Origin: Podarcis erhardii
Lineage: Eukaryota
Reading direction: 5' to 3' (one strand)
Assembly (NCBI GenBank): GCA_964252035.1
Contig: OZ176206.1
Length of the DNA: 64,000 nt
In this document: piece after piece, positions 42,001 to 48,000 of the stretch
How the letters are laid out: each line of letters starts with the position of its first letter
Numbering within the stretch: position 1 is the stretch's first letter
The notes under the pieces: model-generated
The model's database searches: none
Seen by the model: only the letters and a program-made list of their open reading frames with translations
What the model was told of the DNA's origin: nothing
Translations under genes and position numbers: made by a program

Positions 42001-45000
42001 AAAATCTTTCTGGATCAGCAGAAGGGGGCTTATTGCCCCCTCTGTTAATGTTGTGGTAACCAAGGAGGGGGCAATTTGCATCTGTTCCTGAGCACAGAGT
42101 ATTGCCTGTTCCAGCACTGTGTCTGCTTCACTTCCCCACACTTTTGACCCCACTGCCAAAGTTAGTGGGGTTTTGGCTGGGGACTGAAAAAATTGCTTGA
42201 AGCTTGAGGGTGGGCAGATCAGGCCTCAGAGCTGGAAGTTGGCCACCTGTGCCCTAGAGCCATAGGCAGCTCCAGCTGAGCCAGTTTAGGGGCTACCTCA
42301 AATGGCCTCATTGGAGCCTTTTTCCTCTCCGTGGTTCTGTTCATGGAGGAGGAGGAGGTTTCTCATCTTCTTCAAGCCAACTCTTTAAAGAGGAATTCTG
42401 CTCCCCTCTGCCCTAGAGCTCCCTGTTCCATTTTTTTCATGTGGGTTTTCCCACACAGCTTTTTATTGTCAGTTTGGGCCTTGGGCTTGGGCAACTTAGC
42501 GGTTGGAGCCCTGTTCCCGGGGAGGCCTTGGGCAAGCTGTGGCGTGTGCCAGCCTCAGCTCTTAAGGTGGAAATAACCCCATGTGTGTTGTGAAGTGCTG
42601 CCTCCTATGCTAGCCTTTTCTGCAACAAGCTCCAGTCCATGGCCTTTCCTTTTGCACTTTCAGAGAGAAGCTTTAAGGGCTAAACTTTGGCTTGGTCCAG
42701 GAGACCTGGAGTAAGGGAAAACATAATTTTTCCTTTCCAAATTAGTCCAGGTAAATGTTAGGAACAGTTATTATATCATATATGATTCTTCAGCCTGTGA
42801 ACTCTCATTTATTTATTTATTGCATTTATAACCCACATTTTCACCAAGGAGCTCTATGTGGTGTACATGGTTCTCCTCAGTTAATCCACACAACCACCCT
42901 ATGAGGTAGGTTAGGCTGAGAGGCAGGCCACCTAGCATGGGGATAGGAAGCCTTGGCTCTCTGTCAAGCACAGCAACAGGTGCTTGAGTTCCCAAATGGA
43001 GCCTAGTCATCCCACTCCGCCACCAGCTGACAATGCCCTTAGCACAGGGGTCAGCAACCCGCGGCTCCGGAGCCGCATGTGGCTCTTTTACACCTTTGCC
43101 GTGGCTCCGGGGCGGATACTAGCGAGGGAAGGAGGCGCATTGTGCGCCCCAACACTCCCCACTGTGGAGGGCACTGTACTGGCTGTGACGTCGCATGGGG
43201 GCGGTGCATGCGTTAGTCACGCACCGTCCCGACGTCACCTTCCCGCCCACCCGCCCACTACATTGTAAGGGGCATGTACGCTGGTCACTGTTTTGCAGGG
43301 GAGTGAAGAACACACACATAAAAAAAGGTAGCTTGTTAATTTAACGTTTATTTCTATGAGCAGGAGTAATTCTGAGGGGTCAAACAAAGAAATAATAAAA
43401 AAGTGACAAAAAAGTTATTTTTATAATGACGAGTTTTGCGGCTCCCAGTTGTTTTTTCTTCGGAAACGGGTCCAAGTGGCTCTTTTTGTCTTAAAGGTTG
43501 CAGACCCCTGCCTTAGCAGATGTAACAATCCCATAATACCTATTTTCCCAACAACCTGCTGCTTCTAATCCCCAGCGCATTTTCCTCCCTCCTCCTCCAT
43601 TTTTTCTTCCTGAGCCCAGAGGCATGTCTGATCTGGAACTGGAGATCAAAGGGATGTGAAAGACAGCTGCATCCGCATCATCTCAAAGGGTTGAGGTCGT
43701 AACCTGGGCCTTCAAGGCCAAATCAAACAACTATTGAACTAAAGGTGTTGGGCATGGCCCAGTAGGACCTGGGCTGTTTTCACAGCTCTGATGGTTCTGT
43801 GGTGGAACTTGCAGTTAAGTGAAGCGTGCTTCCTCCCCACTGTTTACTCTGGCTTGACTGTAGAATGCTGCCATGACTTCTTGGAGCAAGGCTGTAGGAC
43901 ACACAACACTTCTAGGAGCACATTCAGAAGGGAGACCTTGATTCTAGTTCTCTTCAATGGGCCAGAGTTAGGCTTGATTCCCTGGTGCTGCCCTTGCCTC
44001 TTCCAGGGGCAGTGACTCACATGACATGAACCTTTGTAAGTAGCACCTTTCTGCTATTGTGATTTGTGGATGGCATCTGATGAAGCCGGTCTTTGCCGGC
44101 TCATCTCTGAGGACATCCAGAACTTTGCCACCTTGTTGCTGCACATGAATGCAGCTACCACTTTGGGAATGTGGTCTTTTTGGCACAGCCACCATCAGGA
44201 CAGAGTTGAAGCTGGTTAAGTTGGCACCTTTTGTTGCTGCCTATGACAACCTGGTGCCCTACATATATTTTGGATTACAACTCTCATCAGCTTCAGCCAG
44301 GGAAGGCACCAGGTTAGCAAAGGCGTGTGGTGCTTTGCCAAGCCAGGGGTTTCTAGTTTCCTGTAGGTCAATTCTGCTTCAGAGGCAATTCTTTCCCATG
44401 TGTTGGGAATTCCCTTTTTGAGGCTTGTTCTGGTTTGTTTTGCCTTGCAAGAGAGCTGTATTAAGCTGGCAAAGCTCCCACACTGCCAACAGGGCTGAAG
44501 AATTGAGGGTTTTTCCGTTGTTTCTGGACTATAGCTCCCATCCCTGCTAATCATGCTGGCTGGGACTGATGGGAGATCAACAACATCTAGGGAATCTCCA
44601 CTCCCAGGATAAGGCAATGTGGCAATAAGGCTTTTATAAACACCCTTTGGACAAGGGCAAAAAATAAAATCTGAATAATTATCCAGGTGGGCAATAAAAG
44701 ATCACTTAAAACTATTCTACCTTTCTTAGGCACATTGCTCAATCCTTCCAAGTCCTCTGTGTGAATCTCATTGTCAACCTCTCCTCCTTTCTTTTGAGGC
44801 AGTTCTTTCTCTGCTATCCCCTCTGGATTTGGAATTGGAGAGCTGGGAAAGGGCTCAAAAAGCCATCATTTCAAAGTATCCCCACTAGCATCTTGGACAT
44901 CGGTCCACACAGTTGCCAATGCCTGCCTTCTATGTCACTCCCTGGTGCTTCTCTTTCTCCTGATCTTCCGGTGTTTCCCCCCCCCCCCAATAAATTTTAT

Positions 45001-48000
45001 TGGTTTTCCACAAATTTTTAAACACACCAACAAAAAAAAAAAAATCCTAACCTTATTAAGACTAATCTTATTAACATTGTTAAGCGACTTCCTCATGTCC
45101 CCTTGGTTGAATTTCAGTGTATATCATTTTAACGCTTTTCCAAAACCTATATTCTCATAAAGTTAACTTAATCACTTAACATCTTTCTCCTGATCTTCAG
45201 GTGTTGTGCTGCTGTCGGATGCATTCCCAGAGCGAGTCCTTCCCTACCTGCTGGCCCAATATGGGAGCGCTCATCCAGGCACACAGGAAGCACAGACGGT
45301 AGAGACCAGGATGAAAGTGGGGGAGGCCCTGATGCGCATCACACGGGCACTAGGTGAGTTTGCAGCTCCCACTGGGAATTTTGTGCCAGAGCTGCTCCAG
45401 CAGCGTGTGGAGCACCAGAACATGTGGCTCTGAGGAGGCCTATGCTGGCTTTATAATCACGCTTGTCCAGGAAGTTGAGTAATGCTCATTTACTGATATA
45501 AAACCCACAACTGGTTGTACTAAGTGCAGAGTGCCAAACAGCATTGATGTTCCTTGGCAGCTTGGTACCCAGCCTTCACAATCAACAGATGCCTCTAGCT
45601 TTGCTGTTCAGTGTGTGGGCAGAACATTCCACCTGGACAGAGCCGTGCTAGAAGAGATCCCTGCTCCTTCTTCCATAGCAGCATCTTTGCCTTCAGGTGC
45701 CTAAGCACCAAACTGACAGCAGGGGAAGCTACTGTTGGGACCCACCCAGGTCAACCTCCCCTGGCTTTGGAGTCACGTCCTCTGGCACAGATTGGAGTAA
45801 CACAGCATGCCCTGCCCTTACAAAGGAAAATTAGGCATGTCTAAGGGAATGAGTCACCTCCTTTTTCTAGGCCTCAAGTTGTATTAGAATCTGTGCATGC
45901 TATTTAACGGCACTATTAATTTTCTCCTTGCTTCATTTCCCCATAAATGGAAGTTCAGGAATTGCCCACCAGTTTCCTGCATGTTACAAGGCACCATTAT
46001 AAAACTTGGCTGCATTGCCTGCTGTTTCCCTAAGACTGGAGCTCTGTGACTTGTCTGGGCATGACAGTGGCTGAGTTCTCTGGAACCTAGGCCTTTCTTT
46101 AAAGGTTTTTGTTTGTTAAAGTGATTGCTTCTTGGTGGCATCCAAGCTCCTCTACACAACTGGGGTCTAGGGGGACAGGTACCAGCTTAGCAGGGTGCAC
46201 GAGCCAGTCTTGATGGTGCCACCACAGCCATCTCAAGTCTTTTGTCCACTGCTGTTGCCAGCGAACAGATTGCTCCCTGCACTCTGTGCTGCAAATCCTG
46301 CTTGGCCAATTTAGCCTTATTGTGCTTTATATATGTTGAGCCTAACTCATTAAATTACCATCTGGCCCAGATGTTTCTCCATCTGTGCATCCCACCTGTT
46401 TGTCTGAAGCAGAAAATGGCTAAAAGACTGGCTTTTAAATCTTTTAGTTTGATAAAAGAGAGGGGGGATTACAGGGTTTCCTCCTTGGTTTGGCTTCTGT
46501 GGCAGCTAAATAAATATTTTCTCAAACAGATGTTCAGTGTGTGAGGACCTCTTCTGATTTTCACGCTTTTTGCGTTGAGGGAACTGGCCTATTTGACATC
46601 AGCTTGTCTGCTTGAGAAGCCCTGCATGATGTAAAGGATCCTGGGACAAGTGCACACTCAGGCACCAGGGCCACGCTGTTGACCATTATGTACTGAACAG
46701 GTGACCTAGAACACTCCTGACACTTCCATCTGATCATGCATTGCAAGAAAGGGGTGGTTGTGGTGGTGAGGAAGCCTCTCTGCCATTAATACTGATCTTC
46801 TGATAAGCTTCCAAAGTACAACATGCACCCCCAGATTGAAAACTCCTGTTTGTGGGCCAAGCTGCATCTACCTTGACTGCCCTTTCACTCAGACCAAATC
46901 GGAATATTGTGTGCTTCTTCTGAGTGACTGGTTGCCCACTCCAAGCATAAATCATATTCTAAGAGACTTTAGCATTTCTGGGCAAAGAATGGGGCCTCTG
47001 AAGAGACAAGGCTCCAGGCTGTGAAATTTGGCAATTAACCACCTGGTTATAGGCCTTGTTCCAACATAACTGTTGGCATTCAGCACAATGAATTGTGCCC
47101 AGCATTCCTTGGAGCAGACCCCTTGAAAGGAATGAGCATGGCTAAGTTAGGCCCATTAATCTTATCTAGTCCAAGGATAACTTAGTTGGATACAGTCCAA
47201 TGGCTCTTTAAAGTAACTCCTTGAAGTTCACACATGTGCAAAAGCAATGCCAGAGTTTTGTTTTCCTCAGCAGGTCTGTGATTTTATGAGCAGGTTCATC
47301 GATACCTGGCAAACAAGCAACCCTGTCACACAAGCATACGCAGCATTGGATTCTTGCAAAGCTGCCTTCAAATAGAGCACAGCTGGTACCAGCTCAGATC
47401 TCCTGAATGAATCTACCCACCTGTTTGCCCCCTTCCTCTCTCTGGTTTTGCTGCCCTTCAGGGATGAGGAGGGGAGCTTCTCCATGGCAACACAACCACC
47501 TTCACTACTGGGCTTCTGTTTTTTTTAAAAAATAATTTTTATTAATTTTCATAAAACAAAAAACACAAAATTAAACAAACAAACAAACAATACATGACTT
47601 CCCCATGCCTCCCCTTCACTGCACCCCTGTGTCCAAAATTTTTAGCAATCCTTCATTCCTTTTCAAAATTTGATTTCCTTCATGATTTTCTTAACTTAAA
47701 TATTTCCAACTATAATTCTCTATTTCTTAACCCTTGACATTTTATCAGTCCAGAATTTTGCAACAGTTCTTAAGATATAATTTAAATTTTTTCCAGTCCT
47801 CTTCCACCGTCTCCTTCCTCTGATCACGGATTCTGCCGGTCATCTCTGCCAGTCCCATAAATTCAGTCACCTTTGTCTGCCATTCTTCCAGAGTAGGTAG
47901 TTCTTGCATCTTCCAATACTTTGCTAGAAGTATTCTTGCTGCTGTAGTTGCATACATAAAAAAGATCTTATCTTTTTTTGGTACCAATTGGCCTACTACT

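Follow-up and report, generated by a model that had tools for sequence, protein, structure and literature searches.

A truncated L1 fragment at the TANGO6 exon 15 splice acceptor of Podarcis lizards, with probable rebuilding of the acceptor by its target-site duplication

How can a coding exon be retained when a retroelement has landed on its splice acceptor? This question is raised by exon 15 of TANGO6 in a 64,000-nucleotide stretch of DNA from the lizard Podarcis erhardii (assembly GCA_964252035.1, contig OZ176206.1; hereafter the window), in which a 24-nucleotide sequence holding the acceptor of the exon is present twice, on either side of an L1-like fragment. As a rule, it is only from disease alleles that retroelement insertions into splice sites or coding exons are known, and the one described here is common to two species. 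The ancestral state is directly readable from the empty sites of four sequenced relatives. We consider it likely, with a probability of roughly 0.8, that an antisense L1 fragment inserted at the boundary of intron 14 and exon 15 and that its target-site duplication rebuilt the acceptor on the exon side of the element.

The duplicated acceptor and its empty sites

The two copies of the direct repeat, TCTTTCTCCTGATCTTC[C/A]GGTGTT, are present at 44952-44975 and 45182-45205 and are separated by a spacer of 206 nucleotides (44976-45181). They are identical at 23 of 24 positions. The sole mismatch is C44969 in the upstream copy against A45199 in the downstream copy, where A45199 is the A of the acceptor AG; the repeat with its single mismatch in the AG, as described in an initial annotation of this DNA, was therefore borne out by the sequence. 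As only four 24-nucleotide direct-repeat pairs (at most one mismatch, spacing of 30-7000 nucleotides) are present in the entire 64-kb window, the focal pair is not a chance occurrence.

Mapping by tblastn with lacertid TANGO6 proteins placed 18 coding exons on the plus strand. The segment 45201-45353 is the fifteenth, and both the exon number and the coordinates given earlier are correct. The downstream copy terminates in cag|GTGTT, from which the coding sequence continues, and the frame from 45203 matches the Pfam domain RTP1_C1 (E=1.3e-8), in agreement with the previous description of this copy as the acceptor plus five coding nucleotides. The features of the boundary are as follows.

44952-44975, plus strand: upstream copy of the target-site duplication, an acceptor relic with a polypyrimidine tract, CCG in place of CAG, and GTGTT, the first five exon nucleotides; now a dead decoy
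44969, plus strand: A>C substitution abolishing the decoy AG; A in all empty-site species, C in the window and in P. raffonei
44976-45181, minus strand: very probable 5'-truncated L1 3' untranslated region (UTR) fragment of 206 nucleotides (the insert), antisense to TANGO6, high-copy, missing from five orthologous sites
44977-44988, minus strand: run of 12 G (G12) at the 3' terminus of the element, which reads C12 on the plus strand and is also C12 in P. raffonei
45032-45044, minus strand: A13 on the plus strand (T13 in the element sense), a homogenised L1 3'-UTR (GTTT)n microsatellite
45163-45180, plus strand: three overlapping yUnAy motifs, candidate branch points, inside the L1 sequence and 3' of the last AG of the insert (45161-45162)
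45182-45205, plus strand: downstream copy of the duplication, with the presumed working polypyrimidine tract, the AG at 45199-45200 and the first five nucleotides of exon 15
45201-45353, plus strand: TANGO6 exon 15, 153 nucleotides, part of the RTP1_C1 domain, followed by a gtgagt donor

Orthologous DNA was retrieved via the TANGO6 proteins of relatives, and the corresponding sites were compared.

Podarcis muralis: one 24-mer, cag|GTGTT; insert-free
P. lilfordi: one 24-mer, cag|GTGTT; insert-free
Lacerta agilis: one 24-mer, cag|GTGTT; insert-free
Zootoca vivipara: one 24-mer, cag|GTGTT; insert-free
Logan contig L001: one 24-mer, cag|GTGTT; insert-free
L002, a more distant squamate: one acceptor
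P. raffonei: the same insert at the identical position, with CCG in the upstream copy as well

The comparison across lacertids and other squamates proposed in the initial annotation thus returned a single, AG-bearing 24-mer in insert-free outgroups and never two copies. The downstream 24-mer of the window is a 24/24 match to the single copy of every empty-site lacertid. The filled site was further observed in contigs of three DNA run sets: those of organism A are identical to the window and those of organism B are similar to P. raffonei, both crossing the left and right junctions, and those of organism C (the third set) cross the right junction only. A tree built from ungapped columns of introns and exons, approximately 13.4 kb in all, groups the window with P. 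raffonei with a bootstrap value of 100, separate from P. muralis and P. lilfordi. Given the one-copy empty sites and this grouping, the repeat is the target-site duplication of a lineage-specific insertion.

Identity of the insert and geometry of the insertion

In each of the three DNA runs the summed contig depth over 45063-45164 exceeds the depth of the flanks approximately 600-900-fold, and the insert is therefore a member of a high-copy dispersed family. Alignments to other family copies end near 44976 on the left, and extend through 45188 on the right before passing into unrelated letters. Since the copies overrun the right end only, the insert is complete at the left and truncated at the right, which is its 5' end in the minus sense; this one-sided truncation is the signature of a 5'-truncated retroposon on the minus strand. 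The seven nucleotides 45182-45188, at the start of the downstream 24-mer, are common to the L1 family and the target, representing a 5'-junction microhomology.

The family was assigned through neighbouring elements. P. raffonei carries a 3.7-kb insertion approximately 290 nucleotides upstream of the focal one, and the open reading frame 2 (ORF2) of this insertion matches human L1 ORF2p at 1e-55 and 1e-30. The C-terminal piece of the same ORF2 located two further L1 ends, one at 47999-47754 on the minus strand of the window and one in Zootoca. The 3' UTRs that follow these three L1 ORF2 C-termini align colinearly with the insert, in the minus sense only, and have three features in common with it: a G-rich box (GGAAGTC), a microsatellite, (GTTT)n, and the terminus GGAAAAyyAATAAAAT. 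The alignment reached z=5.2-5.4 for the P. raffonei copy of the insert, a score equalled by none of 300 dinucleotide-preserving shuffles, and z=2.8-3.4 for the window copy, with far lower scores for the opposite strand. When the insert was first aligned locally to the L1 UTR of P. raffonei under stringent scoring, the score fell short of significance; gapped scoring and nearer L1 ends were needed to reach it. The L1 homology of the insert is confined to the UTR, and no coding part is present in it. At 45032-45044 P. raffonei has (AAAC)n on the plus strand where the window has A13, and most family copies carry C at 45035 and 45039. On these alignments the insert is, with high confidence, a 5'-truncated L1 3'-UTR fragment, and the earlier description of an L1-like minus-strand 3' fragment of about 206 nucleotides was upheld, with the refinement that a G12 tail replaces the poly(A).

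Three observations count against this assignment. In the element sense the insert terminates in ...AATAAAATTTATT followed by G12 and A, with no poly(A) tail; the nick site, TGTT/GT, is a weak fit to TTTT/AA; and the homology to the L1 UTRs is distant (approximately 60-65%, with many gaps). Related lacertid L1 ends have a T-run and a short A-run at the place of the G12. Of three nick sites compared, too few for a lizard consensus, that of the window L1 at approximately 47.5 kb likewise shows priming from TGTT/, and that of the P. raffonei L1 lies in an A-run (AT/AAAA in the element sense).

The insert could instead be a short interspersed element (SINE), a member of another long interspersed element clade or filler DNA from break repair, with a repeat of other origin. 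The missing poly(A) tail and the initially non-significant alignment would suit such an origin, as would several blank searches: no further copy of the insert was found within the window or approximately 240 kb of orthologous loci, Rfam returned no matches over 44800-45400, and a peptide search for family copies with a 71-amino-acid reading frame spanning the insert returned none. We nevertheless consider it improbable, because the insert is high-copy and truncated at just one end, is colinear, on one strand only, with three independent UTRs lying directly after L1 ORF2 C-termini, and combines a long target-site duplication with the 5'-junction microhomology typical of L1. Two further L1 insertions in the same data have duplications of 15-18 nucleotides. 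A nuclear copy of mitochondrial DNA, considered for this AT-rich insert, was ruled out, the insert being a high-copy nuclear repeat. A SINE or a DNA transposon was likewise rejected on the lack of a tRNA- or 7SL-like part and of terminal inverted repeats, and on the excessive length of the duplication.

Target-primed reverse transcription probably placed the L1 fragment here, in antisense orientation relative to TANGO6, in an ancestor common to the Podarcis species of the window and P. raffonei. As the element lies in the minus sense, the plus strand would have served as the primer, with the first nick at GGTGTT/GTGC, 5 nucleotides into exon 15. The orientation and the duplication together place a presumed second nick 24 nucleotides upstream, in intron 14. 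The duplicated segment would then comprise the last 19 nucleotides of the intron, with the polypyrimidine tract and AG, and the first 5 of the exon. Intron 14 is present in all outgroups; the insertion lengthens it by 230 nucleotides and creates no new intron. The earlier statement that the L1 inserted 5 nucleotides into the exon thus holds for the priming nick, although the end product is equally an intronic insertion at -19 with a 24-nucleotide duplication.

Two minor observations concern the neighbouring L1 elements. The window L1 at 47516-48008 (minus strand) is a 5'-truncated 3' end comprising the ORF2 C-terminus, a (GTTT)n 3' UTR and an A8 tail; it has a 15-17-nucleotide target duplication, CAGAAGCCCAGTAGT, and was primed from TGTT/, as the focal insert was. 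The 3.7-kb L1 of P. raffonei (L003:29665-33386) is an independent second L1 in intron 14, found in P. raffonei only, in plus orientation and 5'-truncated; its 18-nucleotide target duplication corresponds to window 44666-44683, and its ORF2 is split into several reading frames. A few other copies of the focal insert's family seem to extend into the G12 run.

Splicing signals and the loss of the decoy acceptor

After such an insertion, the copy of the 24-mer adjacent to the exon would be the acceptor in use today, and the other copy, still 3' of the native branch point, would have become a decoy. Consistent with the earlier proposal that the duplication rebuilt the acceptor, the downstream copy holds an intact polypyrimidine tract and AG, without a difference from the outgroups. 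The junction in question involves the following exons.

38013-38078, plus strand: TANGO6 exon 14, located by tblastn, ending ATCCAAG|gtaagc; the donor partner of the exon 15 junction
53083-53244, plus strand: TANGO6 exon 16, located by mapping of lacertid TANGO6 proteins

An RNA-like contig of 1263 nucleotides (depth 45) aligns to 45199-45354 only, and its loose upstream end is the exact end of exon 14; it therefore joins exon 14 to the position equivalent to 45201. P. raffonei RefSeq models span the junction as ...SAIQ|GVVLLSD. The carriers themselves would thus probably use the downstream acceptor, for which the indirect evidence is these gene models, the 18 intact exons of the window, an exon 15 identical in both carriers and a downstream 24-mer without change from the outgroups. 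Two points weaken this support. The RNA contig, whose exon variants (45241 G, 45301 C, 45322 A) are those of P. muralis and L001, is probably from an empty-site species, not a carrier, and the RefSeq models are predictions. A search for partial lacertid transcripts with the C-terminal 320 amino acids of P. raffonei TANGO6 returned none (best match, 70% identity).

Tolerance of the insertion would need no such acceptor if TANGO6, or exon 15 alone, were dispensable or decaying in this lineage, and exon 15, at 153 nucleotides, could be skipped with the frame kept. We regard this as very improbable. All 18 of the 18 exons are present and stop-free in the window and are 94-100% identical to those of other lacertids; the exon 15 sequence does not differ between the two carriers, and its RTP1_C1 sequence is conserved. 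The full identity of the downstream 24-mer to all lacertid outgroups also argues against decay.

The branch point of the rebuilt acceptor was considered next to the AG dinucleotides of the insert. Four AGs lie between the 24-mer copies, with their A at 45059, 45083, 45116 and 45161. By arithmetic, exons beginning at 45061, 45085, 45118 or 45163 would add 140, 116, 83 or 38 nucleotides, respectively, all shifting the frame. The intronic part of the duplication has a single A, at -7, too near the AG, and a branch point 5' of the insert would need to pass all four AGs over at least 260 nucleotides. The branch point serving the acceptor at 45200 is therefore expected in L1 sequence, and by this exclusion we infer that the element donated it within the last ~40 nucleotides of the fragment. 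Three yUnAy candidates are present there: TTAAC with A45166 (-34 relative to the acceptor G), TTAAT with A45171 (-29) and TTAAC with A45179 (-21). The initial annotation had named A45179, 21 nucleotides before the junction; its motif and distance are as described, but it is one of three candidates and not the sole one.

Use of the decoy, were its AG intact, would add 230 nucleotides reading G V S P P P Q followed by a stop, a predicted seven-codon extension that agrees with the earlier expectation that use of the original acceptor would disrupt the coding sequence. Both sequenced carriers have CCG in place of CAG here, and the A>C change is therefore older than the common ancestor of their haplotypes. 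The carriers have in common a branch of approximately 1.3% (three-point distances in a 720-nucleotide core around the insert), or approximately 2% in the 318 nucleotides just upstream. A neutral change at either AG base along this branch has a probability of approximately 3-4%, and one substitution in the 24-mer has a 2/24 chance of striking the AG. These odds are suggestive of a non-neutral change but not decisive, and the pattern was spotted post hoc. A selective benefit of decoy loss would fit the proposed sequence of events, and against it stands the possibility that the AG loss could be neutral decay.

The insertion may, moreover, have been harmless from the outset: the downstream copy would have worked at once with the L1 branch points, the A>C change would be neutral, and nothing would have been rescued. 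We hold this to be possible though not likely. The equivalence of the structure to an intronic insertion 19 nucleotides before the exon is in its favour, and a single substitution in 24 nucleotides is unremarkable for a shared branch of ~1.3-2%. In organism B the upstream copy apparently has extra indels, like a neutral relic, and the decoy, with 5 exon nucleotides followed by L1 sequence, would presumably have been without exon enhancers. Conversely, the decoy had the native branch point and a polypyrimidine tract that is richer than that of the working site (90% vs 80% pyrimidines in the 20 nucleotides before the AG), and would have been expected to compete. Within the 24-mer, the sole substitution falls on the AG, and it predates the divergence of the two sampled carrier haplotypes. 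In addition, retroelements inserted into the AG or polypyrimidine tract of a 3' splice site in human NF1 lead to skipping of the exon in spite of target-site duplications (PMC3219598).

The proposal that the original acceptor was lost after the insertion was accordingly retained in part: the AG is gone in both carriers, but the order of insertion and then loss is inseparable from a change made at the insertion event itself. An error of the insertion event, a later selected change or neutral decay would each account for the CCG. An argument for selection from a short stem (0.0031 in a 15-kb tree) was dropped for the core block, where the genealogy differs and the stem is ~1.3-2%.

Haplotype pattern and comparison with known systems

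Over the aligned 45 kb of TANGO6, mean divergence between the window and P. raffonei is 2.2%, with values per kb of 0.4% to 5.7%. The two are free of substitutions for at most 804 nucleotides in a row (44778-45584; the runner-up is 549 nucleotides), and this stretch encloses the L1 and exon 15. Within a core of 44634-45583, excluding the 230 nucleotides of 44952-45181, the carriers differ at 1 of 718 sites, and from P. muralis and P. lilfordi each of them is separated by 18-19 differences in approximately 720 sites (~2.5%). Given this latter divergence, the region is not generally constrained, and coalescence of the carrier haplotype appears far more recent than that of the sequence on either side. 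The haplotype with the insertion may have undergone introgression long ago or a local sweep. The 3.7-kb L1 of P. raffonei adjoins the left edge of this low-divergence block.

One extension of the favoured explanation would link the haplotype to the decoy. The allele may at first have been harmful, the decoy and the native branch point yielding truncated transcripts; it would have become viable only through the A>C change, made with the insertion or selected shortly afterwards, and the repaired haplotype would then have spread between Podarcis lineages. This would explain the 804-nucleotide substitution-free stretch around the L1 and exon 15, but we regard it as doubtful. The genealogy is a mosaic along TANGO6 (window 14000-62000 compared with L003, L005 and L006): at 18-21 kb the window is nearest P. 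lilfordi (~1% divergent, compared with 3-4% for P. muralis), at 49-50 kb it is nearest P. muralis and elsewhere P. raffonei. Such mosaic genealogies fit incomplete lineage sorting or introgression in Podarcis.

The probable rebuilding of the acceptor can be set beside known systems. Introners are transposons whose target-site duplication supplies a splice site, creating introns inside exons, and are specialised families in protists and fungi. As with introners, the duplication at TANGO6 would supply a splice signal, and an insertion touching coding sequence would be removed as intron; unlike them, it lengthens an existing intron by way of an ordinary L1 fragment. In Alu and L1 exonisation, element sequence supplies functional splicing elements. 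The presumed branch point supplied by the L1 fragment is comparable; the difference is that the predicted TANGO6 mRNA is free of element sequence, the signal of the element serving the original exon. The lizard allele reveals no new mechanism; it is a clear case of a known one that has been kept in evolution.

The closest parallels are two mammalian cases. In the canine merle allele, an antisense SINE lies at the boundary of PMEL intron 10 and exon 11, and its 15-bp target-site duplication holds the original acceptor (PMC7349775). In both merle and the lizard an antisense retroposon sits precisely on an intron-exon boundary, the duplication (15 bp and 24 nucleotides, respectively) keeps a usable acceptor on the exon side, and element sequence would participate in the choice of the 3' splice site. 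Merle is recent and has a visible phenotype, whereas the lizard allele is common to at least two species. The long oligo(T) tail of the merle element drives splicing to a cryptic acceptor within the SINE; in contrast, the lizard element, as an L1 UTR fragment, has no oligo(T) adjacent to the exon, and its upstream duplicated acceptor has no AG.

In human NF1, Alu and L1 elements inserted de novo into 3' splice sites or exons disrupt splicing, through skipping or the use of cryptic sites, and cause disease (PMC3219598). These insertions share with the lizard allele the L1 endonuclease, a position in the AG, the polypyrimidine tract or the first exon bases, and target-site duplications. They differ in that the lizard allele appears to be tolerated, probably because its duplication covers both AG and tract and because branch-point-like motifs are present where the element ends. 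Three features that may make such an insertion survivable are thus suggested: a duplication that covers both AG and polypyrimidine tract, motifs resembling branch points at the element's truncated end, and loss of the decoy acceptor. The locus is also a natural minigene design for the competition of duplicated 3' splice sites and for branch points donated by transposable elements.

A second high-copy repeat, unrelated to the insert, is present at 44552-44603 of the window. The summed depth rises approximately 25-35-fold over this segment, and many of the contigs covering it extend on both sides into GC-rich sequence.

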